This document shows positions 4,772 through 27,671 of a stretch of 64,000 nt of DNA, one piece after another (within the stretch, counting starts at the first letter, position 1; every line of letters starts with the position of its first letter). The notes under the pieces were generated by a model. It ran no database searches, was not told the DNA's origin, and saw only the letters and a list, made by a program, of their open reading frames with translations. The DNA comes from Schmidtea polychroa (taxonomy: Eukaryota), in NCBI GenBank assembly GCA_044892525.1, contig CM097885.1:246698001-246762000 (forward strand), given 5' to 3'. The translations under genes were made by a program, and so were the position numbers.

Positions 4772-6992
4772 TACCAGCAATGGTTGTGATAAAATAATAA
4801 TAAATGGATTGTGAGAAAGTTTGAAGAATCACGGTTTTAAATTTTAAAATTTTAAAATGTTATTTAAATTTAAATCAGGGTTTGTTTGCATAAATTTTTT
4901 GAATGATTTAAAATTTTTAATTTATTGTTAATTTTAATATTTTATTTTTAATTTGAAAATTTAAGCACAGCATAGATATTATAGTGTCAGAAAATTATTT
5001 TGGATTTTTCTATTTGCCATTTCTAAATGAATGAAGAAATTGAATGCAATTCTACAGCAACTAAATGAAAATTCCTCCAGTTGAATCGAATTTAATGAAG
5101 TAAGTTTCTGATGCAGGCGTATCAGTGCATGTAGAAGTTTCAATCATCCCTTGTCGCTTTCGTTCCAGCAATGTTATTCTCTTCTTTATCTATTTTAATT
5201 CAAAATCAAAAATATTTATATTTAAACCATTTTTTAAGTAAATTTCCATTTCAAATATAAAATTTCCACAAGTCGTTATGCGTTGAAAAATAGCGTTTTC
5301 AATAACTTGCGTTGGGTACCTGTTTGACACTTGGAAAATATATCATTTTGGTTTAAAATTTATTTATTTATTAAAATATTATTTTTCTTTTTGATTAATC
5401 AAACGAATTTCAATTAAAAATTTATATTTTCAAATAGAAAAAAAATGTTATTTAAAAAAAGAAATTATAAATATTTTCATTTTTTAATACAGAAAATTTT
5501 ATGAAATATTTTGACGCCATAGATTAAATACAATTTTGATAAATTATTTAATATTCCAGTGGAAAATAAAAACCCAAGAATTAACAAATGAATAAATTCG
5601 TCATTGGAATTTTTCTATTCATTAAAAATTTATTAAATAGAACATGAATTAATGGCGCAAAATTTCCTTTGAAATTATAATTTTCCATACAATGTCATTA
5701 AATATCATCATAAATATAAAATAAATATATGAAATTTAAATATTAATTTGGATGACCCCAACATTATAAGTAAGGAATTTTACAACGCAAAAGAATGAGA
5801 AGTTCATTTCACTAAACTTTTAATTTTGATCACAGCCCTGTTAGATGATATTGATATTATTGTCTCTTGCATTTGCTAGATACTGAAAATTGATTTTCTG
5901 CATTTCTGCATTTGAATAAATTTTACTATTTTTAGTATGAATTCTAAATAATGAATTAGTAAATTTGTGAATTAAGAATGATAATTGGTCGTATTTACAT
6001 ATAAAGTACTCTAATCAAGTTATGTAGGATATTTATGGATCATATACATACAAAGGATCTTTGACAAAAAATCAAAGACAAAACGCTACCCAAATTTTCG
6101 AAATATATCGAAGACTTAGTCAAAAGATTTTTAAAGTTGAGTACATCAATTGACATCTAGTGATTAAAAAATAACCAAACGAACAAGAAAATAAATAAGA
6201 ATAAAGCGACTTAAGACCTTCTATCGGTAGTCATGAACCCAAAAATCAAAATCAATGGGGGAGCAGTTCTAATAATGGACAAAACCTGCTCGTTGATTTT
6301 CAGCCACTGTGTAGATTACCATAATGTGTATATTGATGATAGAAAGCTAATAGTCATGAAGACATTTAGGGAATGGTTGATTACAAATCTATCAGTGACC
6401 TTAGAATATTTAAACAACACACCCTTTAAAGAGCCAAGAATATCTTATAAGCATTCACCTCAACCACCAGTATTATACCAGTATTATACCTTATACAAAA
6501 AGAATGATAGTTTCCCCCTAGAAGAACAAGTCCGTTATTAACAGATTATAAGAAAGCAAAAAACTGAAATGGTGTTGGAATCATCGTTAGAATTAATATA
6601 TTTAGTCATGCATGATAGTTCAAAATAAAAACAATCATTAATCAAAAAGATAATTATAGCAATTGCTAAACCTGAGAGTATTAACACTAAATTTACTGGT
6701 AAAAATAGCCGTAAAAATAGGTATACCTAATTCGACATGCGAAATGAGGGAGTTGGTAGAGGAGAGTAATGACGTATCTAAAAACCAACATATGTATTCA
6801 AAAAATAATAAATCAGTATTATATGGAATAGAATTATGTAGCAATAGAATTTTAAATGAGTCAAATTGGCTCAGTCGGTAAATCTAGTGTTAATAGATTT
6901 ATTTATTTCCTTTGATAGATTAATAGACATTCCGAGGATTCAGAAAGCTGTTGAAGTTCAGTGTTCTTTGAAAAATCATAATAAATGTGATA

Positions 6993-8164
6993 AGTAGTAA
7001 GATGTGTCACCTCCAGGACATGTCACCTCCAGGACACATATATATAAGTAGGTCAAGTTAAAATTAAGTAGATCAAGTTAAAATTATGTAGGTCACGACT
7101 ATATAGGTATTAAAATATGTAGGTCAAGTTACTTTAAATATATGTTACCTCCAGGACACTATATAAATAAATAAGTCAAATTAAGTAGGTCACGACTATA
7201 TAGTTTATAAAAAATATGTAGATCAAGTTATTTTTAACATGTATCCCTATAATATATACATCATTCAAAAGATATTTGAGAGTAGAGTACAATGATCATA
7301 CCTTCAAAGGTGTATGGTGAATCCCTAACCTTCAAAAGGTGCAAAACCCTCGAATTTTTTCAAACTCTATAATACATGTCATTCAAAAGGTAATTGAGAT
7401 GTGAGTATGATGGTCATACAATCAAAGGTGTATGGTGAGTCCTTCACCTTCAAAGGGTCAAAAAATTTCGAATTTTTTCAAACTTTATAATATATATACA
7501 TCATTCAAAAGGTATTTGAGAGTAGAGTGTGATGGTCAAACCTTCAAAGATGTATGGTGAGTCCTTACCCTCAAGTGTCAAAAACTTTGATTTTTATTCA
7601 AACTGTAAATTGATCATTTCAACAAATCTTTCAATCCCCAAAATAAATTTCCCAACTCAAAAATTTCCCAAATTTTAAAAATTCCCAAAAACAATTTTCC
7701 CAACTCAAATTTTTTCAAAAATTAAAAAGTCCCAAAAATGAAATTCCCCAAATTTCCCAACTCAAAATTTTTCAAATTTTAAAAAGTTTTCAAAACTATT
7801 TTCCCAAATTTTCCAACTAAATAGTAAAAGAATATTTTACAATTTTTTTTTTTCCTCGAATACATCAAACCAAAAATTTAACAAGGTTCGTCACACAAAT
7901 CTAATTTTGAAATCAAACAAATGCATTTAATAAAAATTAAAATCATCGACATACACAACCGCCGCCCGCCCGCCCGCCCGCCGCCCGCCCCGAAGGGGCT
8001 GGCGCGGTAGTTTGTAAATTTGGTTTAGTTTGAATATTATTATTTGATACATAGTTTTATTATTTACAATATTCAAAGTATTAATAACAAAGGTAAAGAA
8101 ATAAATGTTTATAGTATGATACTCATTAATATACATTGAACATGCTTTACATTTGCGAACATTT
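6993..8164 (+). repeat. Left terminal inverted repeat of the Polinton
   Basis: Reverse complement of 22108-23230 with only a few substitutions (e.g. gatca/ggtca near 7222), extra CCGC units and a ~45-bp insertion near 8035-8078. It contains tgtcacctccaggaca repeats, three ~120-bp sub-repeats (~7257-7600) and tttcccaactcaaa repeats. Confidence 0.95.
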
Positions 8165-8514
8165 TAAATTTGAATTTTAAGGATTACTTTCGATAGATTA
8201 TATTGAATAATGGTTCATTAAAAAGGTCTCATTTTTTTTTTTTTTTTTTTGGATTTTTGTGAAAAGTTGTAGGTTAGGCTGAAAATTAATTAGTAAAAAA
8301 ATTGACACTTTTTGTGTTGTTGAAATAATTGAAATAAATATTTTAAAAAATGTAAAAACTGAAACGTTAAATATCATTGCAAGTTTGCTTGTCTTTTTAT
8401 TATATGTATCGTGTTGAAATATCTAATTTTCTTATAATCTATCTATCGATCATCTTGTTGCTTTTGAATAATAGTATAAACATAATTATTTTTTCATTTT
8501 AATTATTTTCAACC

Positions 8515-8908
8515 ATGTCGGAAAAAGGTAAAATATGAATTTTATGTTTATTAATTCTTTTTTTTTTTTTTTTATTTAGCATATATAATCAATTTTTTGA
8601 TTGAAAAATTAGAGGAAATATCTAATGTAAAAATTAGAGAATTTATGAATGTTCCAGAGAAATTAAAATGGCCGTATTCAGACGATGAAATTAATGAAGA
8701 TGATATGTCATATGAATCTGAAAATATTTCCCAGCAAGAAGATGAATATACTGATTTGCCTAGTGAAGAACTTAAGTCATGTATTGAGAATTCTACAACA
8801 GATAAATTACCAAATGAATCTAAACAAGAAGATGAATCTATTGTTTTTACTAATTGTATTGATCATATTGTTGAAAATATAATGAAAAGAGATTGTATTG
8901 AAGATTAA
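8515..8908 (+). CDS. Polinton accessory acidic protein, 113 aa, spliced (exons 8515-8527 and 8580-8908)
   Basis: ATG TCG GAA AAA G|gtaaaa...tttatttag|CA TAT ATA ATC joins in frame to the 103-aa ORF (MSEKAYIINFLIEKLEE...). The intron is 52 nt with a poly-T tract. The protein is D/E-rich. Confidence 0.7.
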
Positions 8909-8980
8909 TAAATTTAAAACTTTAGTTATTTTCAATGATTTAAAAACACCAAAACACTAATAAAGATGTATTAAATAAAT

Positions 8981-9575
8981 TTAACATGAACAATGTTCCT
9001 CTTCAAACTTATCTTCGGCTTTTATAATTTTCCAAATTGGTTTGATTCGGTCTCTGCTTACATTATACCCTTGAATTAATATGGTAACCATGCAGGTTAT
9101 TTTGCTCATCTTACCACCATTGGGAATCATATCCAAATCGTTTCTAATGAACATATCTTCATCATCAAATTCAATATTTTCATTGATCCTCTGAAATAAT
9201 TGTCCCAATAGCATCTTGTCGTGAAACTTGATTTTGGAAAGTCTCACATTGTAGAAACATTTTTCCAGAGTTACTGGTTCCTAACAATAAATAATAATAA
9301 TAATAAAATCCAAAATAATTTATAGAAACTTACCTTAAATGTATAGGAAATTGGACAATACAAATAATTTAGTTTGTATTGCATGAATTCGACTGGCTTT
9401 TTTGTATCCACTCGAACATTGACCAAGGTTTCCGTGGATAATGTCGCTTCTTTAAATTTCCTTTTTCCGAATTCCTGAGCGGCATCTGCATTTTTTCTCT
9501 TCAAAACTCCTAGATTAAAAAACTACTAAATGGAATATGTGTAAACGACAACAAACCTGTAATTTGATTATCCAT
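8981..9575 (-). CDS. Polinton accessory protein, 164 aa, three exons (9575-9557, 9509-9334, 9280-8981); function unknown, possibly OB-fold ssDNA-binding
   Basis: Two GT-AG introns (47 and 53 nt; the second starts GTAAGT) fuse ORFs 9271..9504 and 8981..9247 into MDNQITG|VLKRK...YCPISYTFK|EPVTLEKCFYNVRLSK... with no stop. Confidence 0.75.
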
Positions 9576-9777
9576 TTGTAGTTATAATATTTAATAATTT
9601 GAACCAGATATTTTATACTAATTTCATTGTAAACAAGTTTCAAGTGACAGGCATGATCAAAACGTGATCAACTAGTTCATTTTATGCTAAATAACAAAGT
9701 CTGAAATGATTTATTGTACACAAAGAAATATTATAGGTTAATTAAGGTTATCACAAAACAAATATAATTATATTTTA

Positions 9778-10146
9778 TTACAACAATACATTTTTTCGCA
9801 ATTCCACAAGTAATGCATGAATTATTTCTCGTTTCTGTAGATTTACAAAACATGTACAACTATCATCCCCACAAGTATTCTGCATATTATTTTTACAAAA
9901 ATCACAATTTTCAACATCATCGGTATAACATGTAATCGTAGCATGATCCATATGAATTAAATCTATTACATTTATTCCAGTTATTTCATAAATTTTGTAA
10001 AACACAACTTCTGGAGCACAATACATTAAGGAATTGTTCAAATTCGGATAAAAATCTTCAATTTTATCAATCAAAATTTTTAGTATAGTTTCTAAACAAA
10101 AATCAGTAAATTTAAAATAAAAACAGTTACCTTCATGTTCAATCAT
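9778..10146 (-). CDS. Polinton accessory Cys-rich protein, ~122 aa, possibly Zn-binding
   Basis: Open frame whose ATG (10146) overlaps the last codons of the TBP-like gene. It has a C-terminal CDFC...CGDDSCTC cluster. No family recognised. Confidence 0.65.
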   Translation of the reverse strand: MIEHEGNCFYFKFTDFCLETILKILIDKIEDFYPNLNNSLMYCAPEVVFYKIYEITGINVIDLIHMDHATITCYTDDVENCDFCKNNMQNTCGDDSCTCFVNLQKREIIHALLVELRKNVLL

Positions 10147-10651
10147 TGTTGAATAAATATTCAAGCAAATCCTCGTTACTTATATTTGAAGAAATTGTTA
10201 AAGATCCAATCAAATCCTTTACATCGTTTATAATTCCTTCAACAATAGTATGAAAATCTAAATTTTTAATACCTAGTACAACTATTTTACCACTCGAAAA
10301 TATATTAACACATAGTGGATTATATTTTGTATAACGCAGAGCGGGAAATAATTCAGGCTCATATATACAATCTCCATCTAATAACTTTGCTAAATTATTC
10401 AAATTAATAGATTGTTCAACCTTGGTAGCTATAGTAAGACTTTGAACTTGAATATCTTTGATATTATATTGCAAATTCTTGAATTCGATAGGCTTCTTAC
10501 AACCCATTATACGACATTTACCATTTTTGAAAAATATAATAGTATATTTTCCAGTTTTGTCAACATATTGTTGTGGTTTACACTTGGGGAAATTCATCAT
10601 ACCAACAGTTTCCAAAGACACACGACCTCTATAATTAATATTTGTCAACAT
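10139..10651 (-). CDS. TATA-box-binding protein (TBP) homologue, 170 aa, encoded inside the Polinton
   Basis: It has the two-repeat TBP architecture. Repeat 1 is TNINY...TIIFFKNGKCRIMGCK (cf. TALIFSSGKMVCTGAK). Repeat 2 is IQVQSL...INLNNL...IYEPELFPALRY...VNIFSSGKIVVLGIK (cf. YEPELFPGLIY...LLIFVSGKVVLTGAK). Confidence 0.9.
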   Translation of the reverse strand: MLTNINYRGRVSLETVGMMNFPKCKPQQYVDKTGKYTIIFFKNGKCRIMGCKKPIEFKNLQYNIKDIQVQSLTIATKVEQSINLNNLAKLLDGDCIYEPELFPALRYTKYNPLCVNIFSSGKIVVLGIKNLDFHTIVEGIINDVKDLIGSLTISSNISNEDLLEYLFNND

Positions 10652-10676
10652 TTCTACTGAATATTTAAAAAATCAA

Positions 10677-10677
<1 letters not shown>

Positions 10678-10734
<57 letters not shown>
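10678..10734. repeat. (TA)~28 microsatellite in the divergent intergenic region between the TBP-like and ATPase genes
   Basis: Read directly from the sequence. Confidence 0.95.
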
Positions 10735-10737
<3 letters not shown>

Positions 10738-10809
10738 ATATTATAGAGTAATTAAATCAATTTATTCTTTACGATATAAACAAAATTAATTTTTAAATAA
10801 ATATTAAAA

Positions 10810-11436
10810 ATGGAACTAAGAAATGATGCTGTATATCAAATAGTCGGACCAAGTGGTAGCGGCAAAACTTTGTTTGTTTGCAAATTACTAAAATCACATT
10901 TATTTGAATCAAAATTTAACAAAATGTATTGGCATCGAGGTGCTGATCAAGAACACGGATTGACTCAATCAAGTTTCTGTAAATTGAAAAATATGAAAAT
11001 AGTAGAGGGATTTGATAAAAATTGGTCCAGTAGACTAAAGAAGGGGGATGTCATAATTATTGATGACTTGTATCAAGAAGCTAATAAAGAAAAGAATTTC
11101 AATAATTTATTTACCAAAATCAGTAGACACGTTGGTGTAACTGTTATTTTTATAACTCAAAATCTATTTCATCAAGGTGGTGCACATCGAACACGTAATT
11201 TAAATGTACAATATTTAGTTATTTTCAAGAATCCTAGAGATGCAACAGTGATTGATTTTCTTGCACGTCAAGCATACCCTAACAATCGTAATTTTCTTAT
11301 CAGTGCATTTCAAGATGCTACAAAAATACCTCATGGATATATATTTCTTGATTTCACACAACAATGTCCCGATGATTTACGAGTAAAAACAGCTATTTTC
11401 AACCCAAAAGGTGCCATGGTTTATAAACAAAGTTGA
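10810..11436 (+). CDS. A32/FtsK-like genome-packaging ATPase, 208 aa
   Basis: Walker A GPSGSGKT, Walker B VIIIDD, and FTKISRH and FITQNLF motifs typical of Polinton ATPases. Confidence 0.95.
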   Translation: MELRNDAVYQIVGPSGSGKTLFVCKLLKSHLFESKFNKMYWHRGADQEHGLTQSSFCKLKNMKIVEGFDKNWSSRLKKGDVIIIDDLYQEANKEKNFNNLFTKISRHVGVTVIFITQNLFHQGGAHRTRNLNVQYLVIFKNPRDATVIDFLARQAYPNNRNFLISAFQDATKIPHGYIFLDFTQQCPDDLRVKTAIFNPKGAMVYKQS

Positions 11437-11454
11437 AAACCTCTATGAATAATA

Positions 11455-11988
11455 ATGTTTCTAAAAGCAAGGGTGAAAAATATTAGGAAATTAAGAAAAA
11501 GTATTAAAAAGAGTATTAAAGTTCCAAAGGTTCCACCAACAACTAGTTATACACCATCTAAAAAACTTGTAACTGAAAATTTCTCTGCAATGAATCTTAT
11601 TTCGAAAAATCCTAAACCTAAACGTGAAACCCGTAAAACCCGTAAAGCCGGTAAAAAAGTAATTAAAAATCATCGCAGTTTTCCATTTTTTAATGCATTG
11701 TTAAAGGCCCCGAGTATGAAAAGAATGAATATATTGCAATCATTCCCAAATTTTGTTGTCGATGATTTACTCAATATTATACTTAAAGTAGTCAAAGGCA
11801 AAATTAAAATCAGTAAATCAAAAAAGCATTTATTGAGCAAACATAGGAAACCTTTGTTATCATTAGTAAATAATAAAAATCGTAAGCAAATGAGGAAAAT
11901 TATATATAAACAACAAGGTGGATTTATTGGTGCATTGATACCTCTGGCATTATCATTATTAGGTGGAGTTGTAGGAAATCAATCATAA
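11455..11988 (+). CDS. Highly basic putative core/DNA-condensing protein, 177 aa, with an adenovirus pX-like C-terminal hydrophobic helix
   Basis: K/R-rich; ends KQQGG|FIGALIPLALSLLGGVVG, reminiscent of the GG-cleavage site plus hydrophobic tail of adenovirus pX. It lies between the ATPase and integrase genes. Confidence 0.7.
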   Translation: MFLKARVKNIRKLRKSIKKSIKVPKVPPTTSYTPSKKLVTENFSAMNLISKNPKPKRETRKTRKAGKKVIKNHRSFPFFNALLKAPSMKRMNILQSFPNFVVDDLLNIILKVVKGKIKISKSKKHLLSKHRKPLLSLVNNKNRKQMRKIIYKQQGGFIGALIPLALSLLGGVVGNQS

Positions 11989-11991
11989 ACA

Positions 11992-12219
11992 ATGGGTGCT
12001 AATCCTTCATTACCTAATTTAAATTTTAATTTTAAATCTTCTTGCTGTAATGGAGAAGATTTGGACGAACCCAGAAGACGAAGCCGGTTTCGGTGGAGTG
12101 GCAAAATTAAAGAAAAGAGTTCCGAATTCGAAAAAAGAAACCCAGAAGTGGTTATCAGATCAGCTTGCGTACAGTTTGAACAAACCAATGCGGAAAAGAT
12201 TTCCAACAAGAGCCTATAA
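11992..12219 (+). CDS. Candidate overprinted 75-aa ORF with an N-myristoylation motif, overlapping the integrase 5' end
   Basis: The ATG is in a strong context (aacaATGG), 3 nt after the previous stop. It reads MGANPS (Gly2, Ser6) and runs in a different frame from the integrase. May be fortuitous. Confidence 0.4.
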   Translation: MGANPSLPNLNFNFKSSCCNGEDLDEPRRRSRFRWSGKIKEKSSEFEKRNPEVVIRSACVQFEQTNAEKISNKSL

Positions 12220-13189
12220 AACATTTGGTATTGACGATTTATGGCAAATGGATTTGATGGAGATGATACCGTATTCGAAAATTAACAATGGGAATAAATA
12301 TATTTTAACATGTATTAATGTATACAGCAGGTTTGCACGAGCAATACCAGTCAAGGCAAAATCTGCAGATGAAATGTCAAAGGCAATTAATATTTTATTT
12401 AAAGATGGACATCCTANNNNNNNNNNNNNNNNNNNNNNNNNNNNNNNNNNNNNNNNNNNNNNNNNNNNNNNNNNNNNNNNNNNNNNNNNNNNNNNNNNNN
12501 NNNNNNNNNNNNNNNNNNNNNNNNNNNNNNNNNNNNNNNNNNNNNNNNNNNNNNNNNNNNNNNNNNNNNNNNNNNNNAATAGCAAAGTTAAGCAAGTCCT
12601 CGATAAACTGAAAATAAATCACTACTCGGTACATTCTCAATACAAAGCTGCCCATGTTGAAAGATTTAATCGAACATTGAGAGATAGATTAAAGAAATTG
12701 TTCGTGCATCAAGGTAATAAAAAATGGGTAAATGCTTTACCGAAAATAATAACAAGTTATAATCATTCATCACACCGAGGACTGAATGGATTAAGACCGG
12801 TTGATATTACATCAAAAACATTCTATTCTAAGAAATCTGTAAAAATTGCAAAACCTAAATATAAAGTCGGTGATCATGTTAGAATTAGTAAAATTAGTGC
12901 ATCACCATTTATTAAAAATTTTGATACAAATTGGAGTGATGAAGTCTTTGTAATTTCAAAAATAAATACTAAACAGAATCCTGTAATGTATGTCATCAAA
13001 GACAGTGATAATAATATTGTACAAGGGAAATTTTATGAGCAGGAATTACAAGTCATTCCTCCTCCAAAGGTATTTAGAATTCAAAAAATATTGAAAACTA
13101 AAAAGGTCGGCAAGGATAAACAATACTATGTCAAATGGCATGGTTATCAAAACCCGTCATGGATATCAGCAAAGGACCTAGTAAAGTGA
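12050..13189 (+). CDS. int: Retroviral-like (rve) integrase with a C-terminal chromodomain
   Basis: WQMDL (first catalytic Asp), KAAHVERFNRTLR (Glu) and chromodomain FRIQKIL...YYVKWHGY...SWI. The second Asp falls in the N gap at 12417-12577, so intactness cannot be verified there. Confidence 0.93.
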   Translation: MEKIWTNPEDEAGFGGVAKLKKRVPNSKKETQKWLSDQLAYSLNKPMRKRFPTRAYKTFGIDDLWQMDLMEMIPYSKINNGNKYILTCINVYSRFARAIPVKAKSADEMSKAINILFKDGHPXXXXXXXXXXXXXXXXXXXXXXXXXXXXXXXXXXXXXXXXXXXXXXXXXXXXXXNSKVKQVLDKLKINHYSVHSQYKAAHVERFNRTLRDRLKKLFVHQGNKKWVNALPKIITSYNHSSHRGLNGLRPVDITSKTFYSKKSVKIAKPKYKVGDHVRISKISASPFIKNFDTNWSDEVFVISKINTKQNPVMYVIKDSDNNIVQGKFYEQELQVIPPPKVFRIQKILKTKKVGKDKQYYVKWHGYQNPSWISAKDLVK

Positions 13190-14202
13190 ATTTTTATACT
13201 ATTTTACCGAGCAATAGTTGCCCATTAATTCATCCAGACAATCAAGCCAGTAAATTTATGGTCAATCTCCAGAATCCGATTTCTTTAAATGGTGACTGGG
13301 AAGTTGCACTGCAAGATTTTACATTCGTGTACAACACATTCCCATTTTATAGTCAATGTAAGATTGATTTCAAAAGGAATATTGTGAAAACATGTAGCGG
13401 TATCTTTATTATTAGTAATTATGATAAAACATATCATATTCCGAACCAAATATTAGATTCGCATTGCTATATATTTTACAAGGATGGATTAAATATCAGT
13501 TGTGATTTTAAACCATTTACAATAACATTCGAAACTATTGAAGATGCCAAACGAATGGGTTGCAATAAGCTGAAAAATATTGTTATGGAGACCGAGTATT
13601 TATTACGTTTTAATCTATTTGAAGCAAACAGTATAGTGAAAGAAGAAATCAAAATATCTGTGTCGTATAACGATGAAGTTGAAGAATCATTCATCTTTGC
13701 TGATGAATTATATTTTGATAAACTTGATGTATTACTTAAATATTTAAAGTTCAATTGTTCACACATATTTAAAAATTTGGAAATTGTGAAAGATTTGATG
13801 TTTACCTTCAGTTTGAATGAGGATATTTGCGAAGTTACATTTGATAAAAATTTGGCAAATTCACTTGGATTAGATAAGCAAATATATAGAGAAAAATCGA
13901 CTGGTATACGCAAACCAAGAATACTAGAACATCATCAACAAATGTTCATATATACTAACATTATCGAGCCCATAATTGTTGGTGATTCCAGTGTTCCTCT
14001 TTTGAAATCGGTATGGATTGGAAAATATGAACATGATGAAGTTGTCAATATAAATATCGATAATCCCATGTATTTACCAATAGCAAGTTCATGTATAAAC
14101 AATATAGAAATAAATATTCGTGATGATAGTGGAAAACTTATAAACTTTCCAAAAGGTTCAAAAACTCATTTGACATTACATTTTCGTAAAGTAGATGGCT
14201 AA
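13135..14202 (+). CDS. Minor capsid (penton-like, single jelly-roll) protein; start uncertain
   Basis: N-terminal FYTILPSNS...F.V.L..PISLNGDWEVAL and C-terminal IYTNIIEP..VGD...PLL...IEINIRDDSG...LHFR are Polinton penton motifs. The codon at the expected start (13186) is GTG; in-frame ATGs exist at 13135 and 13159. Confidence 0.88.
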   Translation: MAWLSKPVMDISKGPSKVNFYTILPSNSCPLIHPDNQASKFMVNLQNPISLNGDWEVALQDFTFVYNTFPFYSQCKIDFKRNIVKTCSGIFIISNYDKTYHIPNQILDSHCYIFYKDGLNISCDFKPFTITFETIEDAKRMGCNKLKNIVMETEYLLRFNLFEANSIVKEEIKISVSYNDEVEESFIFADELYFDKLDVLLKYLKFNCSHIFKNLEIVKDLMFTFSLNEDICEVTFDKNLANSLGLDKQIYREKSTGIRKPRILEHHQQMFIYTNIIEPIIVGDSSVPLLKSVWIGKYEHDEVVNINIDNPMYLPIASSCINNIEINIRDDSGKLINFPKGSKTHLTLHFRKVDG

Positions 14203-14557
14203 TTCTGATATTATTAGTATGTATAGTGATAGCCAATCTGGCGGTGAATTACCATATTTTATTGGTAAACAGTACGGATCGGGATGGTTGAGAACAATTG
14301 GTAGATTTGCATTGCCTATTCTTAAACGTATTGGTAGTTTTGGTATGAAAACTGCAAAAGATGTTATTATGAATGAACAGAAAATATTACCATCTCTAAA
14401 AACAAATGCTTTAGCTGAATTAGGGAAAGTTTTACCAGGGGTTGCAGGTATGTTTCAAAAAGATACGCCTCCAGGTCCAGCTCCAAAACGTAAAAGACAT
14501 GGAATATCACGTATAAACAAACGAATGAAAGGACATGGAACTATATTTGCAAAATGA
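14195..14557 (+). CDS. Small Polinton virion protein, 120 aa, with an amphipathic helix (adenovirus pVI-like membrane-active candidate)
   Basis: QSGG and QYGSG motifs are followed by the amphipathic WLRTIGRFALPILKRIG and a basic tail KRKR. It lies between the penton and major capsid genes and overlaps both. Confidence 0.7.
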   Translation: MANSDIISMYSDSQSGGELPYFIGKQYGSGWLRTIGRFALPILKRIGSFGMKTAKDVIMNEQKILPSLKTNALAELGKVLPGVAGMFQKDTPPGPAPKRKRHGISRINKRMKGHGTIFAK

Positions 14558-15777
14558 TTTGTGGTAAATCTGAATTATGTATATTTGATAGACCATCGCC
14601 CCAGGCTGTAATAGAATTTGGGGCATTTGAGGAAGTTTTTCCTATGAATTCAATTACCGATAGTAGAAATGATGTAGAATTTTACATCAATGGTTCTCAA
14701 ACAGAATATTTAGATTTGAATGATACTTTATTGATTGTTCAAATCAAGGTTATAGATAAAGATAAAAAGGCTTTGGGTGATGCTGATGCTACAATACCTA
14801 ATAATTTTTTGTTTCATACACTTTTTAAAGATGCTATTCTTGGATTTAATAATATCAAGATTGAAGGTGGCAACAATACATATATCCACAAGGCGATAAT
14901 AGAAACTATTTTAAATTATAATACCGACACCAAAAATACATGTCTTACTCCTATGGGTTATGCAGCAACTGATGACGAACGGAAAAAATGGATTAAAGGC
15001 TCAAAGATTTTCACCATGTGTTCATCATTACAACTCGATTTTATGGATCAACCAAAATATTTACTTCCAGGAGTCAATGTACACATTAGACTGAAAAGAA
15101 CCGATTCTTCTTTATCATTAACTAGTGGTGCTGGTCAACCAATATGTCAATTAGTTGATGCAAAATTACTAGTAAGAAGAGTTCGAGTTGATCCGTCGGT
15201 ATTAGCAGGTCATCAGTTGGGTCTTAATTCTAAGCATGCAATCTATCCTCTGAAAACAAAAGAAATTGTTTCATTTGCAATAGCCAAAGGTGCTTCTTCC
15301 TTCTATAAGGAACAAATATTTGGAGATAGAAGAATGCCAAACTTTATTCTGGTAACATTTCAAGGTGAAGCACAATATAATGGTTCATATAGTGCCTCAA
15401 GCTCAATTTTCAAAACCTTTGGTGTTACATCTCTAACTTTGTCGAAAAATACTGATTATCGAGAAACATATACTCAAGATTTCGATAGTGACAATTACTG
15501 TGCTACATATATGCAGAGTATTGTTAGAAATATGGGATATTTAGATAAAAATTTGAATTGCGGCATAACTCTTGAAGAATTCAAAACCAAATATCCATTC
15601 TTTACATTTGTTTTGGCCCCAGATTTTGATTTGAATCAGAGTCAATTACCTCAAAATGGAAATTTACGATTAGATATAAAGTTTGCAAAAGCTATTACAG
15701 AACCTGTGCATGTTATAATATATGGAGTATTTGAAAATGAAGTTCAAATTACTGCAAATAGAACGGTTCTGGTATAA
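14554..15777 (+). CDS. Major capsid protein (double jelly-roll, hexon-like), 407 aa
   Basis: SELCIFDRPSPQ..IE...EEVFP, YLDLNDTLL, FMDQPKYLLPGVNVHIRLKR and GNLRLDIKFA motifs match Polinton MCPs; the ORF is intact. Confidence 0.92.
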   Translation: MICGKSELCIFDRPSPQAVIEFGAFEEVFPMNSITDSRNDVEFYINGSQTEYLDLNDTLLIVQIKVIDKDKKALGDADATIPNNFLFHTLFKDAILGFNNIKIEGGNNTYIHKAIIETILNYNTDTKNTCLTPMGYAATDDERKKWIKGSKIFTMCSSLQLDFMDQPKYLLPGVNVHIRLKRTDSSLSLTSGAGQPICQLVDAKLLVRRVRVDPSVLAGHQLGLNSKHAIYPLKTKEIVSFAIAKGASSFYKEQIFGDRRMPNFILVTFQGEAQYNGSYSASSSIFKTFGVTSLTLSKNTDYRETYTQDFDSDNYCATYMQSIVRNMGYLDKNLNCGITLEEFKTKYPFFTFVLAPDFDLNQSQLPQNGNLRLDIKFAKAITEPVHVIIYGVFENEVQITANRTVLV

Positions 15778-15804
15778 ATGTATACAGAAATACAGAAAGT
15801 TGTC

Positions 15805-16181
15805 ATGGAGTAAGTTGTTTTTTATACTGTTTAATTTATTAAAATAGTTCTGTTCAGGTTAATCGAATTGGAAAACAAATATTAGGAAATGAATTTTTAG
15901 GAGTTTTTCCTCTCGATAAAATACCATTTTTGAAAAATAATCAAGCCATAATCGTCAATACCCATTCATCTCATCTCGGCGGAGAGCATTGGATTGCAAT
16001 CTATATGAAACCAGATAAGATACATGTATTCGATCCTATGGGTTTCTATTATCCTGCTTTATTGGTTTCGAAACTACAAACAATGGGCAAACCTATTGTA
16101 TATAATAAAACAATGTATCAACACCCTTTAACTCGTACGTGCGGACAACATTGTTTAGGATGGCTTATGTCTATTAAATAA
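15805..16181 (+). CDS. Adenain-like cysteine protease, ~112 aa, spliced (exons 15805-15809 and 15848-16181)
   Basis: Catalytic residues appear in GEHW (His), FDPMG (Asp) and YQHPLTRTCGQHC (Gln, Cys). The frame has no ATG after the stop at 15840. ATG GA|gtaagt...aaatag|T TCT restores MDSVQVNRIG...FLGVFPLDKIP through a 38-nt intron. Confidence 0.85.
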
Positions 16182-16232
16182 TAAATGTTTTTATAAAAAT
16201 GTGTTTTTATTATTTTATAATTATTATTATGT

Positions 16233-16273
<41 letters not shown>

Positions 16274-16437
16274 GTTTTATTATTTTTATAATTATTATTA
16301 TGTTTTATATTATTACAATAATAACAAAGTCCGTCATGAACGGTGCATGCTCCGTGCATGATTAACAAAGGCATATTATCACGTTATAAACAATTGTAAT
16401 ACAAATTTCATCATAATTATTTTATTACAATTTTAAA

Positions 16438-16900
16438 ATGTCATCAATTAATACTAAAATCAATGTGGTTCTTTCGAGAAATGGTAAGGATTTTTATTTA
16501 TTTATTTATATTAAATAATTAAATTTACAATTAGAAACTCGTACCGTTAACTCGTCAGTCTTCAATAGGCGATTAGGTTCTGGAAATGATGGAAATGGTA
16601 TATTTATAATTATTATAAATACTTTAATTATTATTATTATCTTTATTATTTAGACAATTATTTTGGTGATTGGGCCGCAATTACCGAAAATGACGACATA
16701 TTAGATATTTCAAACATATTCCAAAATGGTAATTTATTAGTTTAATTAAAATTGTATTACCATTAACATTTTAGAATCTTCTGTTTCTCATAACAAGAAT
16801 TTTCCAATAATAAATGCCGCAGTAGTGGATACCTCCGTTGCGTATAATTTGAATGCTCCCATCCCTATTGGGGACTCAGTTTCGAATAACGAATCAAAAT
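16438..16900 (+). CDS. Multi-exon Polinton gene of unknown function (exons 16438-16483, 16535-16597, 16654-16728, 16775-16900; 3' end unresolved, gap at 17044-17175)
   Basis: Three GT-AG introns (51, 56, 46 nt) plus a fourth GTATGT donor are all phase 1, and the internal exons are 63, 75 and 126 nt. The joined frame is open: MSSINTKINVVLSRNETRTV...GDWAAITEND... Confidence 0.7.
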
Positions 16901-17350
16901 GTATGTTTCATTTTATTAATATATAGTTTTTAATTAATTAATAACTTAATAATAATATAGATTTTATGTAAATATAATGTAAATATAACTTTATGTAAAT
17001 CATTTCAGTTATCATTAAAATAGTAATTGTAATAGTAATAATTNNNNNNNNNNNNNNNNNNNNNNNNNNNNNNNNNNNNNNNNNNNNNNNNNNNNNNNNN
17101 NNNNNNNNNNNNNNNNNNNNNNNNNNNNNNNNNNNNNNNNNNNNNNNNNNNNNNNNNNNNNNNNNNNNNNNNNNNACATTAACTAATTATTTTATAGTTG
17201 ATAATATTATAGACAAATTTTAAATGAAAGATTAAATTACATTTATTATTATTATTATTATTATTATTAAATAAATAATACATTTTCATTCAATAAATAA
17301 TTATTTAACTTTTATTAGGCAAATTTTATCCTAAATATTGTAATTCGTCT

Positions 17351-20300
17351 ATGGGTCATGACAATAAATGCCACAAAAATATGAAGAAATATTATCGCCA
17401 ACCTTTTAATGGCATCAACTTTTTTATTTGCCCCATATGCAAAACTTCCCAGAGTGTAAGGTATAAGGAATTTTATAGTCAACATTCTCAGCACTTAAAT
17501 TCTTTCAAAACAAATAAACAAGAACTGTTTAAAATAATAAATAAGAATAACATTGAAATTGTAAATATTTTAAATAATAACACAAAAAAGAAATCTAATA
17601 AAAGACCTGCTGAACATAGGGTGTCTAAAATTAAAAATAAAATTATAAAAACTGAAGTTATTGAGATCAGTGACGACGAAATTATTAAAAATGAAGTCAT
17701 TCTACTCAGTGATGACGAATGTAATAATATTACATATACTATAAATCATGATATTATAAATGATAATATTGATACTATAAATGCTATAAATGAAAATATA
17801 AATAATGATAATACTATAAATACTATAAATCAAATAGGTGGATCATCTTTAGCGATTGAGCCGATAATAGAATCAAATTTAAATGGCGCCATTCGAACTA
17901 TTCGATTTAATATTGCCGATTCACAATTAATTAAAATTATAATAACGGATAAAATCACTGAAAAGTTAACATCTGAAATAAATAACATGGGTAGCGTCAA
18001 AATTCAATTCGCTATTCTTATAAGATTTGAAAAAGATGGGGAAATCCGTGACAACTACTTTTCAAATAACGCCGAGATCTTTTCGGATAACTTTTTAATT
18101 GAGGGAGTTAATAAGTTAAACGAAAAAATTGAAAAGTTTACCTATTTAGGTAGTGGCTGGAGAGTAATTAATATCTTAGAGATTGATTTCATTCTGACTA
18201 AATTTGCTCCTATTTGTCGCCTATCTGGTCATAGTTACATTCGTACACCCGCAGATTTGAAATCTAAAGGAGCAATTATTAATGTTAAAAATAAGGATCA
18301 TAAGTGTTTCCTTTATAGTATTCTCGCGCTCTTGAAAAAAGATGAAATAGGTAGCCACCCTGAAAGAGTTTCAAAATATGAAAATCTTTTAAATATTCTT
18401 AATTACAATGAAGTCACGGATTGTCCGATGAAATTGTGTAATATACCTAAATTCGAAAAGAAAAATTTAGACTTAAATCTTGCCATAAATGTTCTGGCTT
18501 ATACCCCTACTGTGATAGTTGATGATGATCAGGTTCCTAATGACTATGTTTTTAAACACCCCCACTTAAGTATAATTCACAGATCAACGGTTACTATCGG
18601 TACTCGAATTTATTTATTACTCTTGGAAAATAAGGATAATTATCATTACACCGCAGTGACCAACATTACACGTTTAATGAACTGCCATCGTAATAATGAC
18701 TGTAGTATTCAAATAAGATGCAAATGGTGCCCACATTGTCTTAACGGTTTTCGATTAGACAATGCTTTCACTAAACATGTGGCCCTATGCAGTAAAAATC
18801 AAACGGGTACAACCCTTTACACTTTACCCGAAAATAAATATTTAGAGTTTCAAAATCATTCAAAGAGAATCACCCCACCCTTTGTTATTTATGCCGATTT
18901 TGAATCGGTTTTACCTAAAGATGTTAAACATCATCAAATACATTTACCTATTTCAGCAGGTCTTTTATTAATAAATAATCTTAACAATAGAAAATCGTAT
19001 TACGAGTTTTATGGTCTTGATTGTATACCTCAATTTCTTAAAAAAGTAGAGGAAATTGCTGTCACAATTGTCCTACCTTATTATGAGCTTGAAGGGAAAA
19101 AACGGTTAGGACCTATGACTTTTGCTGAGGAACGACAATTCAAATCTTGTAGGAACTGCTATCTTTGCAAGAAGGTTTTATCCCTTGCTGTTCGAGATCA
19201 TGACCATTTTACTGGTAATTATCTCGGTGCAGCCTGTAGGAAATGTAATATGGCTCGCAGAATTTATAAACAGCTGCCGATTGTATTTCATAATTTACGA
19301 GGCTACGACTTACACCATATTTTAAAATATGGTCTCAATGGCTTTCCTTCTTGGAATTTGAATATAATACCCACAAGCACAGAGAAATTTATCTCGATGA
19401 TTGTTCACATTAAAAAATTAGCTGTTCGTTTTATCGACAGCATACAATTTGTTAATTGTTCTTTGGCTAAGGCTGTAAAAACTCTAACTGATCTTCCTTT
19501 GACTTCGTCGGTTTTTGATAGGTTAATAATAGATGCTAAAGCCATATTTCCTTATGATTATGCGACTGATTTGGATGTACTTGAAACCACTTATGAATTG
19601 CCTCCTATTTGGTCTGGTGTTACTGAAGATGAGTATGCTAAGGCTCAACTTATTTGGACTCAACAACGTTGTACTAAATTGGCTGACTATATGTTAACTT
19701 ATCAAAAATTGGATGTATTCCTCCTTGCGGACTATTTCCAACAATTTCGTGCCAAGGCCATTGCATACAATGGTCTAGAACCTCTAAACCTTTATGGTAT
19801 TCCGGGTATGTCATGGGCCTCAGCGCTTATGACATTTACTGAGCCTATAGAACTTTTACAGGACATGGAAATGTTCAATTTTTACGAAGGAGGAATACGT
19901 GGTGGGTTAACATTTGTTAACAAACATTACGTTGCTGCTTCTGATAATACAGAATTATTATATATTGATATAAATAATCTGTATGGTTGGGCTCTTAGCC
20001 AAAATCTTCCTTTTGCTGATTTCACTTGGGTGTATGATGGATTGAATGATGTATTGCTTGAGTGCATGAATGCTGACATTGAAATCCTTCCCTATGGTTA
20101 TACCATAGAAGTGGATATAGATATTCCAGAAATTTTTCATGATTTCTTAAATGACTTTCCTCTTGCTCCTGAGAAAATGTGCCCGCCTGGTTCGAAAGTT
20201 GAGAAGTTGATGCTCACGCATTGGCCAAAGAAGAACCATGTTCTTCATTGGAGGCTTCTCAAGCTTTATTTGTCTCTTGGTGCCAAAGTTGTACACATCC

Positions 20301-21253
20301 ATAGAGCTATAAAATTCAAGCAAGCACCGATTTTTAAAAATTATATAAATAAAAATACACAGCTAAGAGCTGAAGCAAGCAGTGAACTGTACAGAGATTT
20401 ATTCAAATTGTATAATAATAGCTTGTACGGTAAATCCGTTGAAAACCTTAAGAAGAGATTAAATTTACGACTATGTAATTCCGCGGAAAAATTAATTACA
20501 TATTCATCAAAACCATCATTTAGAAAAACCATCAAAATTGATGATGATCTTTTTGGTGTACATCTCAATAAGGAGTCTATATGTTTGGATAGACCCAGCT
20601 ACATCGGACAATCAGTGCTGGATTTATCCAAACTAAGGATGTATCAATTACAGTACATAGAATTATCAAAATATAGGAGTCAGTTTAACTGTGATATAAA
20701 TATAGTTGCGGGTGATACCGATAGTTTCTTCTTAGAGGTCAAAAATGTAAAGCTTGACGTTCTTTTGCCAGCGATGATTTCGGATGACTTGTTAGACACC
20801 TCAAATTATGATCCCTCTCATCCTTTATATTCTAGGAGACTCGACTCAGTTATAGGAAAGTTTAAGGATGAGAGTAAGGGTGTAGGATATAGTGAGTGGG
20901 TTTTCTTGCGACCAAAGTGCTACAGTCTTTTAGGAAATAAATCTACTATGAGAGCTAAGGGCGTAAAATTACCAGGTACAGATATAAAACATCAATCTTA
21001 TTTAGACTGTTACAACAACAACACAGTTATTTCTGTACCTCAGACTAGAATAGGAACCCGAAATCATCAGCTTTTTACCTTTAAAAACTCAAAGATTGCT
21101 TTAACTAATCATGATGATAAAAGAGCTTGGGTAGAGAAAAACTCTAGTTTTGCATATGGTCATTATTTAGGGGTTGATGTCATTGATAATGACGATAATG
21201 ATATTCAATCAGGAGCAGATCCCGATCTCATCAATCAACATCTACAAGATTAA
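17351..21253 (+). CDS. polB: Protein-primed family B DNA polymerase (pPolB), 1300 aa
   Basis: Exonuclease motifs YADFES, HNLRGYD and YQKLD; polymerase motifs YIDINNLYG, KLYNNSLYGK and GDTDS. It has an inserted endonuclease-VII-like segment (CYLC...DHDH...CRKCN) and a long N-terminal region. Confidence 0.97.
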   Translation: MGHDNKCHKNMKKYYRQPFNGINFFICPICKTSQSVRYKEFYSQHSQHLNSFKTNKQELFKIINKNNIEIVNILNNNTKKKSNKRPAEHRVSKIKNKIIKTEVIEISDDEIIKNEVILLSDDECNNITYTINHDIINDNIDTINAINENINNDNTINTINQIGGSSLAIEPIIESNLNGAIRTIRFNIADSQLIKIIITDKITEKLTSEINNMGSVKIQFAILIRFEKDGEIRDNYFSNNAEIFSDNFLIEGVNKLNEKIEKFTYLGSGWRVINILEIDFILTKFAPICRLSGHSYIRTPADLKSKGAIINVKNKDHKCFLYSILALLKKDEIGSHPERVSKYENLLNILNYNEVTDCPMKLCNIPKFEKKNLDLNLAINVLAYTPTVIVDDDQVPNDYVFKHPHLSIIHRSTVTIGTRIYLLLLENKDNYHYTAVTNITRLMNCHRNNDCSIQIRCKWCPHCLNGFRLDNAFTKHVALCSKNQTGTTLYTLPENKYLEFQNHSKRITPPFVIYADFESVLPKDVKHHQIHLPISAGLLLINNLNNRKSYYEFYGLDCIPQFLKKVEEIAVTIVLPYYELEGKKRLGPMTFAEERQFKSCRNCYLCKKVLSLAVRDHDHFTGNYLGAACRKCNMARRIYKQLPIVFHNLRGYDLHHILKYGLNGFPSWNLNIIPTSTEKFISMIVHIKKLAVRFIDSIQFVNCSLAKAVKTLTDLPLTSSVFDRLIIDAKAIFPYDYATDLDVLETTYELPPIWSGVTEDEYAKAQLIWTQQRCTKLADYMLTYQKLDVFLLADYFQQFRAKAIAYNGLEPLNLYGIPGMSWASALMTFTEPIELLQDMEMFNFYEGGIRGGLTFVNKHYVAASDNTELLYIDINNLYGWALSQNLPFADFTWVYDGLNDVLLECMNADIEILPYGYTIEVDIDIPEIFHDFLNDFPLAPEKMCPPGSKVEKLMLTHWPKKNHVLHWRLLKLYLSLGAKVVHIHRAIKFKQAPIFKNYINKNTQLRAEASSELYRDLFKLYNNSLYGKSVENLKKRLNLRLCNSAEKLITYSSKPSFRKTIKIDDDLFGVHLNKESICLDRPSYIGQSVLDLSKLRMYQLQYIELSKYRSQFNCDINIVAGDTDSFFLEVKNVKLDVLLPAMISDDLLDTSNYDPSHPLYSRRLDSVIGKFKDESKGVGYSEWVFLRPKCYSLLGNKSTMRAKGVKLPGTDIKHQSYLDCYNNNTVISVPQTRIGTRNHQLFTFKNSKIALTNHDDKRAWVEKNSSFAYGHYLGVDVIDNDDNDIQSGADPDLINQHLQD

Positions 21254-21613
21254 TTTAATTCTGTGATCGGACTTGTTTGAATTTTTGTAAAATAGAAATT
21301 ATTGTAAAGTCTCTTTTTCGTTTTATAATTATCGGTTTTCTTTTTTTTTTTTTTTTTAATAATTTGATGTGTAAAAGTATTTTATTAGAATGTAGTTTGT
21401 TAATAAAAATAATAATAAAAATAATAATACTTACTATATTGTGCACAAACATTATATCTTCAAATATATAACCATTGGATAGAGCTCTTCAAGACCTTTT
21501 TAATGAACCATTATTCAATAAAATCTATCGAAGATAATCCTTAAAATTACCATTATTGATTTTAAATTATTTTCTTGTTTAATAAATGAGTTGTTTTAAT
21601 GTATCTCTTATAA

Positions 21614-22171
21614 ATGTGTGCAGAATATAAGTATTTTCATAAATTTATTAAGAAATTACTGATGACCACGAGATCATTCAAGTTTTTAAACTGCACCGTT
21701 GAAGATTTTATGAACAATTATGATACTCTCACTGAAAAGGAAACCATAAAAATTTTAGAAATTTTCAAACATTCCTCCATTGGATATTTGATTGATTTAT
21801 TTAATTACAATAAATGCATTTTGAAGTTATCGATTTATTTGATGCATTTAGACAAAGCAATAGTAGATAATGATTCATTGAATGAATGCTTTTGGAATTG
21901 TATGGATTTAAGGCTGGAACCAGGATATAGTAGTAGATTGATTTATGAATGGATATCGAAATCCGAATTGATTGAAAATAAGCTAAGGAAAAAACTCAAT
22001 GATGGTAGGAAAATGTATTTAACTTGTTACATTTGTAAAGAAAATCAAGTATCGGTTTTGTTTTTACCTTGCGGACATGTAATTGTATGTTCTAAATGCC
22101 ATGATTCAAATGTTTGCAAATGTAAAGCATGTTCAATGTATATTAATGAGTATCATACTATATACATTTAA
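21614..22171 (+). CDS. IAP-type C3HC4 RING-finger protein, 185 aa (putative E3 ubiquitin ligase)
   Basis: C-terminal CYICKENQVSVLFLPCGHVIVCSKC...CKAC...I matches the IAP/MDM2-type RING spacing; no BIR motif is seen. Confidence 0.85.
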   Translation: MCAEYKYFHKFIKKLLMTTRSFKFLNCTVEDFMNNYDTLTEKETIKILEIFKHSSIGYLIDLFNYNKCILKLSIYLMHLDKAIVDNDSLNECFWNCMDLRLEPGYSSRLIYEWISKSELIENKLRKKLNDGRKMYLTCYICKENQVSVLFLPCGHVIVCSKCHDSNVCKCKACSMYINEYHTIYI

Positions 22172-27096: not shown

Positions 27097-27434
27097 TCCC
27101 TCTCACCCCCCCCCCTTTGCGGACGCCCATGTTTTTAATACATTTTCATTAACAATGAGCACCTATCGTAGAGTAAATAATAGTTCTATAACTATCAGGT
27201 TAAATATATTATTTATTTAATGAATAATAATAATGAAGACAACTATTATTATTTAGCGTGCCTCTCGTTGGATATAAGAAAACTACTTTCAATATTCTTT
27301 ATCAGTTAGTTGCTAAGTACAGAATGAATAAGTTGGCAGTGGACAAAGTTACGAGTTCCAGAAAGGAAGCAATACATCGGTAAACACATCTGTAAATATT
27401 TATGTGACACTCAACTTAAAATAATCACTTGTTG

Positions 27435-27482
27435 CTGGATAAGGTACTGGATAAGATACTGGATAAAGTACTGGATAAGGTA
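27435..27482 (+). repeat. Four tandem 12-bp repeats (CTGGATAAGGTA)
   Basis: Units start at 27435, 27447, 27459 and 27471; two have small substitutions. Confidence 0.9.
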
Positions 27483-27538
27483 CAGTGACGATATTTAGAG
27501 TGTTATTTTGTTTAAATATTCGGATTTTATATTAAATA

Positions 27539-27618: not shown

Positions 27619-27671
27619 TATATTTTTTGGAAATAGCGTGTTATATTTAAGAAATATTAACGGGAATATTA

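Follow-up and report, generated by a model that had tools for sequence, protein, structure and literature searches.

Within a 64,000-nucleotide (nt) stretch of the Schmidtea polychroa genome (contig CM097885.1 of GenBank assembly GCA_044892525.1, positions 246,698,001 to 246,762,000 of the forward strand; hereafter called the window), we found a freshly inserted 16-kilobase (kb) virus-like transposon of the Polinton/Maverick type in an invertebrate genome. The element carries an intact gene for a small TATA-binding protein (TBP), and a TATA-like word, YATAAACA, stands in front of many of its other genes but not of the TBP gene. The features of the element are given below, with sizes in base pairs (bp) or amino acids (aa); its ends were placed from the inverted repeats and by reading the termini.

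6993-23230, no strand: whole Polinton/Maverick, 16,238 bp, termini AG...CT
6987-6992, no strand: left copy of the target-site duplication, GTGATA, 6 bp
23231-23236, no strand: right copy of the target-site duplication, GTGATA, 6 bp
6993-8229 (end approximate), no strand: left terminal inverted repeat (TIR); identity to the right arm is 100% over 6993-7971 and 80-97% further in
21492 (approximate)-23230, no strand: right TIR; its inner part carries the RING gene, which is absent from the left arm
10139-10651, minus strand: TBP-like gene, 170 aa, intact from ATG to stop ("short-type Polinton TBP")
10652-10809, no strand: divergent intergenic region between the TBP gene (minus) and the ATPase gene (plus)
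10678-10745, no strand: (TA)35 microsatellite, ending about 27 nt upstream of the TBP ATG
10810-11436, plus strand: packaging ATPase (Pox_A32-like), intact; Pox_A32 at 29.4 bits against a cut-off of 22.8
11455-11988, plus strand: 177-aa basic protein, conserved in sibling elements
12050-13189, plus strand: integrase (rve with C-terminal chromodomain); integrity is judged outside one masked run of N
13135-14202, plus strand: conserved 355-aa gene (ORF355, for open reading frame), a minor capsid or penton candidate by position only
14195-14557, plus strand: conserved 120-aa gene (ORF120)
14554-15777, plus strand: conserved 407-aa gene (ORF407), a major capsid protein candidate by position and size only
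15805-16181, plus strand: adenain-like cysteine protease, two exons; Peptidase_C5 at 29.6 bits against a cut-off of 21.3
17351-21253, plus strand: protein-primed family-B DNA polymerase (PolB), 1300 aa, intact, with an Endonuclease-VII-like zinc module
21614-22171, plus strand: RING-finger (C3HC4) protein, 185 aa
9778-10164, minus strand: putative 128-aa ORF just downstream of the TBP gene, with no homologue in sibling loci and of uncertain coding status

The initial annotation, made from the letters alone, had called the element a Polinton, and this was borne out. GTGATA is perfectly duplicated on both flanks, and a 6-bp target-site duplication is a classic Polinton hallmark. The TIRs are about 1.2-1.7 kb long, with the outer ~990 nt 100% identical between the arms, and PolB occurs together with an rve integrase, a packaging ATPase and an adenain-like protease. 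In the readable sequence the element genes contain no stop or frameshift (there are two masked runs of N, one of them within the integrase gene). As had been stated, the ORFs of the element include no RNA polymerase gene, judged from the ORF list and a Pfam search. ORF355 and ORF407 are conserved and syntenic across related loci; a search for a jelly-roll capsid identity gave no match in Pfam, PDB or PHROG for either product, and a single-sequence model of the 407-aa protein reached a predicted local distance difference test score (pLDDT) of only 32.

The 170-aa product had been read as an intact two-repeat TBP lying inside the TIRs, and our comparisons agree with that reading. The Pfam TBP family PF00352 matched it in two stretches with E=2.3e-17 and 63 bits, against a curated cut-off of 22.9. 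A phmmer search of PDB sequences returned only TBPs down to E ~1e-6, the best being archaeal (2z8u and 1mp9, ~1e-14). When 108 family members were aligned profile to profile with 22 canonical TBPs (hhalign), both halves aligned with a probability of 99.6% and E=1e-23, which removes the case, raised at the outset as a possible refutation, that no TBP profile would match. An AlphaFold2 model built from the 108-sequence family alignment had a pLDDT of 95 and a predicted template-modelling score (pTM) of 0.82. All 44 significant PDB fold matches of this model were TBPs (TM ~0.6-0.66), among them complexes with TFIIB (1c9b, 1ais), NC2 (1jfi), Mot1 (3oc3), TAF1 (4b0a) and Brf and full pre-initiation complexes. 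The modelled fold is a two-repeat TBP saddle with a reduced N-terminal half, and the gene divides as follows.

10466-10651, minus strand: reduced N-terminal half-repeat, residues 1-62; strands 2-10, 28-31, 37-41 and 45-51, short helix 13-17, no H2
10217-10465, minus strand: C-terminal repeat of canonical length, residues 63-145; stirrup Y97-P103, F102, F118, helix 134-156
10139-10216, minus strand: acidic/hydrophobic helical tail, residues 146-170 and stop; absent from most relatives, whose typical length is 144-155 aa

In cellular TBP the C-terminal stirrup docks TFIIB, while the N-terminal stirrup and the helix H2 serve TFIIA, NC2, Mot1 and TAF1; on DNA, the C-repeat occupies the 5' half of the box and the N-repeat the 3' half. 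The two halves of the Polinton protein differ in what they have kept. The C-repeat retains Y97-E98-P99-E100-L101-F102-P103 and F118, that is, the YEPELF stirrup and both phenylalanines that the initial annotation had picked out. Conservation across the 108 sequences is at least 90% for E98, P99, E100, F102 and P103, which align with the same motif in canonical TBPs, and nothing else in the short-TBP family is as well conserved as this TFIIB-contact stirrup. The N-half has lost about 9 residues in its H1/stirrup part, close to the ~10 estimated before, and about 14 residues of H2 and linker; the inter-repeat helix is indeed gone, and in the model the last strand of the N-half leads directly into the second repeat. 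Of the four kinking phenylalanines, F41, F102 and F118 are kept. F41, noted earlier as part of IIFF, is invariant in the family, as is M49, and N4, N6, Y7, P26, C46, R47 and G50 are near-invariant, whereas the position of the first N-repeat phenylalanine is occupied by Y29 and varies. Minor-groove contact residues, assigned from the alignment and textbook TBP knowledge rather than from coordinates, are replaced: the first-strand Asn of the C-repeat by S71, and the last-strand Thr of each repeat by M49 and L126. By these comparisons the protein is an atypical member of the TBP superfamily, with the four-Phe set and the Asn/Thr contacts incomplete. The tail is present in the window TBP and in its 94%-identical relative, and it holds 5 of the 11 differences between the two; the tail may serve as an extra segment for interaction or activation.

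An exact-sequence look-up of the window TBP gave no record. A word-indexed search returned 107 relatives, and an exhaustive search of 1.84 billion representatives gave 126 proteins at E<1e-10. The top ~100 of these are single-stretch proteins, mostly of 140-200 aa, matched over the whole query; canonical two-repeat TBPs appear only from ~1e-11. The short-TBP family comprises more than 100 clusters at 50% identity with the same reduced architecture, and 171 coding stretches belonging to it were found in JGI metagenomes, largely from soil, peat and freshwater-type samples. Scans of IMG/VR gave no relative of this lineage: the 407-aa protein and the ATPase had no relatives there, and the TBP alignment gave only one locus, L010 (we number related loci with an L). 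This 44.7-kb sequence (UViG 3300020438_000074, 47% GC) encodes a TBP-like C-repeat with 33% identity and lacks Polinton genes, and hence represents a different virus with its own TBP.

The search proposed earlier, for TBP-like genes beside Polinton genes, was informative. Of 29 loci of at least 4 kb with a TBP gene, 25 carry homologues of the ATPase, integrase, ORF355, ORF120, ORF407 or PolB; the linked ATPase homologues reach down to 36-40% identity, and the linkage to Polinton genes extends over PolB identities down to 32-38%. Conversely, all three loci chosen by PolB similarity alone (35-38% identity) carry a PF00352 gene. A further PolB-selected locus, L095, is a fragment among retrotransposons. 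The TBP gene usually directly precedes the ATPase gene, both in the same orientation; some loci have it after the capsid module instead, and in the window it is inverted relative to the ATPase gene. In L001, L002, L005, L013 and L021, TBP and the ATPase-to-capsid module share one strand and PolB is convergent. Across 10652-17350 of the window, TBP and the module point away from each other and PolB runs in the direction of the module, an arrangement that looks like an inversion of the central module.

Complete ORFs were seen in 68 of the 75 TBP copies whose N-terminus is covered. The ratio of nonsynonymous to synonymous substitution rates (dN/dS), which the initial annotation had suggested measuring across copies, has a median of 0.29 over 90 pairs and falls to 0.16-0.17 in the less saturated pairs at dS<0.8. 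These values indicate purifying selection on the TBP gene across the family. In a neighbour-joining (NJ) tree, crude as it is with 145 columns, the Polinton TBPs were separated from canonical TBPs in 91% of bootstraps and the short family formed one group in 65%; members of the window family are at most 28% identical to any canonical TBP. Judged by its distribution, TBP is a near-constant lineage gene of one large Polinton clade and not a host passenger. The idea that a captured host TBP copy is decaying neutrally inside one element can be dismissed, given the intact ORF, the >100 clusters of common architecture, the Polinton linkage across PolB identities down to 32-38%, dN/dS values of 0.16-0.31 and the separate grouping at ≤28% identity; nesting within host TBP under neutral decay, the second refuting case envisaged at the outset, is thereby excluded.

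We noticed a recurring TATA-like word in the intergenic regions and then ran an unbiased screen of 7-mers in the 80 nt upstream of every ATG-initiated ORF of at least 80 aa. In the first seven loci, ATAAACA and TATAAAC were the top 7-mers (46 of 123 regions, 4.4 expected, P=2e-34). The same two came out on top in three further independent groups of loci and in 61 short loci (P 1e-12 to 5e-31). The same screen gave no enrichment of either word in the window outside the element. The 85 distinct instances have T (56) or C (29) at position 1 and A (72), G (9) or T (4) at position 8, and their flanks carry no signal; the motif is therefore the 8-mer YATAAACA. In the element of the window, the gene strand carries eight copies of TATAAACA, where ~1.4 would be expected, and none of 500 simulations reached eight; the opposite strand carries one. 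The 47.8 kb outside the element contain one copy on the plus and four on the minus strand. The copies standing before genes of the element, all on the plus strand, are these.

8475-8482: about 49 nt before the ATG of a spliced gene running into ORF 8597-8908
10775-10782: 35 nt before the ATPase ATG
11422-11429: 33 nt before the ATG of ORF 11455-11988, inside the last ATPase codons
11984-11991 (C at position 1): 66 nt before the integrase ATG
14094-14101: 101 nt before the ATG of ORF 14195-14557
14512-14519: 42 nt before the ATG of ORF 14554-15777
16385-16392: 53 nt before the ATG at 16438, the first exon of an unassigned gene

The distribution over genes was counted within 150 nt upstream in ~90 loci. 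The motif precedes the ATPase gene in 34 of 35 loci, ORF407 in 16 of 17, ORF120 in 13 of 13, the integrase gene in 20 of 26 and ORF355 in 11 of 17. For the TBP gene the count is 5 of 82, which equals the background of 6.6%. Spacing is tight: in 31 loci the ATPase motif lies 31-50 nt from the ATG, with a mode of 35-36 and most at 31-38 nt, and before ORF120 the distance is 98-107 nt in 10 of the 13 loci. The window PolB and RING genes likewise have no YATAAACA upstream. Two other readings of the motif were rejected. Its copies are embedded in three different reading frames of upstream genes, which makes the motif a signal at the DNA level and not a product of coding constraint. The ATPase copy in the window lies in the divergent region, where no upstream gene on the same strand exists, so it is not a 3'-end or poly(A) signal there.

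The TBP genes have promoters of another kind. An ordinary TATA box, defined as a match to the textbook 8-base pattern, precedes 33 of 75 of them, mostly 34-60 nt before the ATG (mode 36-37, median 45); CCAAT-like boxes are frequent, and a TCAT-type word occurs near the ATG. The distances are alike in the two classes, with a median of 36 nt for YATAAACA and 45 nt for the ordinary TATA box of the TBP genes. Where the window has (TA)35, sibling elements have an ordinary single TATA box, and the microsatellite looks like an expanded TATA element.

The motif also follows the type of TBP. In L094 (PolB 38% identical), a short-type TBP C-terminus occurs together with the motif. In L091 and L092 (PolB ~35%), the TBP is longer and more canonical, is 21% identical to that of the window, and keeps H1, H2, the Asn and the Thr. 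The stirrup motif of this longer type is changed. The virion-side genes of L091 and L092 show no YATAAAC enrichment. A YGCAAA-like word upstream of these genes was considered as a replacement motif and dropped, as it was not significant after correction for the number of k-mers. Thus, with two types sampled, the motif tracks the short TBP type.

We propose that the protein is an early-expressed, TFIIB-recruiting minimal TBP that switches on the late genes of the element, and we put the probability of this reading at roughly one half. The TBP gene would be transcribed from a host-type core promoter, with its ordinary TATA box and often CCAAT-like boxes, or the (TA)35 repeat in the window. The TBP saddle would then bend promoter DNA and recruit host TFIIB and polymerase II (Pol II) through the retained C-terminal stirrup. 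Judged against textbook structures, the surfaces for TFIIA, NC2, Mot1 and TAF1 would have gone with H2 and the other losses in the N-half. The remodelled N-half may read the 3' part (AAC-A) that distinguishes YATAAACA from an ordinary box, which would amount to a new specificity. By reading YATAAACA, the protein would turn on the late, virion-type genes, giving an early-to-late cascade that runs on host Pol II. The initial annotation had offered, as one of two roles, that the paralogue redirects host Pol II and TFIIB to the element's promoters with altered specificity. At the level of sequence this is supported by the conserved stirrup, the replaced DNA-contact residues, and a motif found at late-type genes but not at the TBP gene.

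A broader version extends the scheme to an entire clade of Polintons associated with animals. Its members would share an autonomous two-stage programme on host Pol II, in which host TBP fires the TBP gene and, judging by the window, the polymerase and accessory genes, while the element's own TBP and YATAAACA fire the packaging, capsid-module and integrase genes, and TBP type and box would co-evolve between clades. We put this extension forward only tentatively.

Several points weigh against the proposed cascade. The link between protein and motif is a correlation drawn across sequences, and the elements of the short-TBP clade behind it all carry the TBP gene. Since a perfect ordinary TATA hexamer is part of YATAAACA, host TBP itself might act on the motif. 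Another host factor could read it as well, because the seven bases at its 3' end fit the core consensus of forkhead-domain proteins. L091 and L092 form a TBP-bearing clade without the motif. L093 encodes exactly the PolB protein of L092, but an unrelated 211-aa gene stands there in place of the TBP-RING cassette; TBP is therefore dispensable or exchangeable, at least in the long-type clade. The DNA-facing residues carry the caveat of their assignment given above. Finally, the only close pair, the window copy and L009, has a dN/dS of 0.67 on 15 differences, which is uninformative.

Some of these points would suit a general-purpose TBP substitute that acts at all TATA-type promoters, early and late, and does not discriminate YATAAACA from ordinary TATA boxes. 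Its value to the element might lie in independence from TFIID and the host's TBP regulators, or in a larger supply of TBP in a host with few TATA promoters. The TATA hexamer within the motif fits such a role, as do the retention of the TFIIB stirrup alongside the loss of H2 and part of the N-terminal stirrup, and the occurrence of TBP without the motif in the L091/L092 clade. A substitute of this kind, however, leaves three things unexplained: the fixed C7 and A8 together with the tolerated C at position 1, which make the motif a poor ordinary TATA box; the avoidance of the motif by the TBP gene (5 of 82); and the replacement of DNA contacts in the short type only. We consider it unlikely.

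It is also conceivable that motif and protein have nothing to do with each other. A host factor, for example of the forkhead type, would then read YATAAACA, or the motif would mark RNA 3' ends, and the TBP-like protein would have another task, for instance in protein-primed replication or packaging, where it might bind AT-rich stretches close to the ends of the element. The forkhead match, which serves as a lead only, would agree with this, and so would the loss of TBP in L093. TATA-like runs, moreover, lie within ~50 nt of each terminus of the element. Against a separation of motif and protein stand the tight spacing to the ATG (31-38 nt for the majority of ATPase genes), which matches the spacing of the ordinary TATA boxes in these elements, and the covariation of the motif with TBP type. 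A G at the second motif position, presumably preferred by forkhead proteins, is not enriched, and the ATPase copy in the window, with no same-strand gene upstream of it, cannot be a poly(A) signal. In our judgement these facts make the separation improbable.

The second role offered in the initial annotation was a dominant-negative decoy, which would shut off the host by occupying its TATA boxes or by tying up TFIIB without initiation. The protein has lost the surfaces for cellular partners and kept the TFIIB stirrup, as a decoy might. Nothing positive favours this role, however; a matched motif before the element's own genes would be needless, and a transposon that is inherited vertically after integration would gain little from host shut-off. 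A decoy thus appears very improbable.

To our knowledge, the timing and control of gene expression in Polintons/Mavericks, elements without an RNA polymerase, are essentially unknown, and gene timing bears on whether they behave like viruses or like transposons. If the early-to-late cascade is correct, no smaller viral system for reprogramming Pol II initiation would be known than this self-encoded, TFIIB-competent minimal TBP and its private TATA variant. As a minimal TBP that occurs in nature, the protein would also show which portions of TBP can be dispensed with, and it would parallel the herpesvirus late-gene system while being reached through a true TBP homologue. YATAAACA also provides an easy way to recognise the clade's late genes from sequence in genomic and metagenomic data.

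Other features of the element deserve mention. The protease gene has a 5-nt first exon and a short intron, an arrangement shared by L005 and L006 and checked by reading frames, and an ordinary TATA box lies ~33 nt upstream of it. Short spliceosomal introns occur in element genes of the window (15805-15848 and ~8524-8596), of L005 (~12419) and of L006 (~6494, 7934 and 14304), and point to nuclear expression by Pol II. The relatives of PolB bear PF03175; nearly all are metagenome proteins, the best at 63% identity. An Endonuclease-VII-like module (PF02945) is inserted at PolB residues ~596-635, just below threshold here and recorded in many relatives, and it marks this PolB clade. Just before the integrase ATG, in another frame and directly after a YATAAACA copy, lies a short conserved Pro/Ser-rich frame starting with Met-Gly (11992-12049). 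It is found at the same place in L001, L002, L005 and L006 and may encode a small protein, perhaps a myristoylatable one, or act as an upstream ORF. The RING gene (21614-22171) sits in the less identical inner part of the right TIR, with no counterpart in the left arm (8102-8229); RING genes adjoin the TBP gene in L001 and L092. The TIRs contain a 16-bp terminal doublet and three 118-bp tandem repeats (7005-7036 and 7247-7604, with mirror copies in the right TIR).

The flanks of the element have few long ORFs and form a mosaic of transposon remnants (25363-29171, 43626-44244, 48825-49220, 50174-50633 and 59347-60477). These comprise hAT sequences, gag and an integrase zinc finger from an LTR retrotransposon, two DDE fragments of the IS1595-like type, and GIY-YIG and reverse transcriptase parts of a Penelope-like element. 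The nearest named relatives of the IS1595-like transposase are from spiders, nematodes and aphids (48-61%). An Rfam search of the window gave no match.

A gene labelled "TBP" has been drawn before on the maps of midsize eukaryotic linear dsDNA (MELD) viruses with an adintovirus-like PolB (Fig. 5 legend; Starrett et al. 2021, PMC8502044; preprint 10.1101/697771), and the preprint legend groups TRAF, UCH, TBP and F-box (10.1101/697771). In L006, two TRAF/MATH-domain genes with ordinary TATA boxes (854-1858 and 5476-6447) lie beside the TBP gene. Given this neighbourhood and the set of genes named in the legend, the gene of Starrett et al. very likely belongs to the same family as the window TBP. 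Their label appears in figure legends only, with no family definition, structure, selection, promoter motif or role. The initial annotation had placed TBP outside the recognised Polinton core genes. That view holds insofar as the literature we searched, which leaves out most subscription journals, contains no description of the short-TBP family, the promoter motif or the two promoter classes; it does not hold for this lineage, where the gene is near-constant and had already been labelled. What is new here is the YATAAACA motif and the two promoter classes; what was known is the bare TBP label on a gene map.

With cellular and archaeal TBPs (PF00352), the Polinton protein shares the two-half saddle, the C-terminal stirrup motif, three of four kinking phenylalanines and the strand order. 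It differs in its core of ~145 aa rather than ~180 aa, in the loss of H2 and of part of H1 and the stirrup in the N-half, in the unconserved first N-repeat phenylalanine, in the change of Asn/Thr to Ser, Met and Leu, and in being the gene of a mobile element that forms its own group. The TBP-like proteins of giant viruses (Mimiviridae, phycodnaviruses and homologues of asfarvirus B263R) are likewise virus-encoded and have the TBP fold (E 3e-8 to 1e-4), but they are only 11-21% identical to the Polinton TBP, are mostly longer and belong to viruses with their own RNA polymerase, which they serve. In the fold search, the best cellular TBP (5e-10, 23-27% identity) scored above the best viral one (3e-8, 11-21%), so the Polinton protein is not closer to the giant-virus TBPs.

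Virophages and polinton-like viruses, small elements that belong to the same broad group of viruses, have one short conserved motif before most of their genes, which mimics the late promoters of giant viruses (PMC8547959, PMC10945749). These viruses borrow the transcription machinery of the co-infecting giant virus, whereas the element in the window has introns, TATA-type geometry and its own TBP, which together point to host nuclear Pol II. The closest functional parallel is found in herpesviruses, where KSHV ORF24, EBV BcRF1 and HCMV UL87 are TBP-fold factors that read a TATA-variant box in late promoters and work with host Pol II (PMC4893493, PMC7498053, PMC12529657). The same logic is proposed here for the Polinton TBP. 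The likeness is functional only, since there is no sequence homology and the fold match to BcRF1 is marginal (E=0.02, TM 0.32). The herpesvirus mimics are large, multidomain proteins that contact Pol II directly and depend on five further viral factors, whereas the Polinton protein is a small, true TBP homologue with a TFIIB stirrup.

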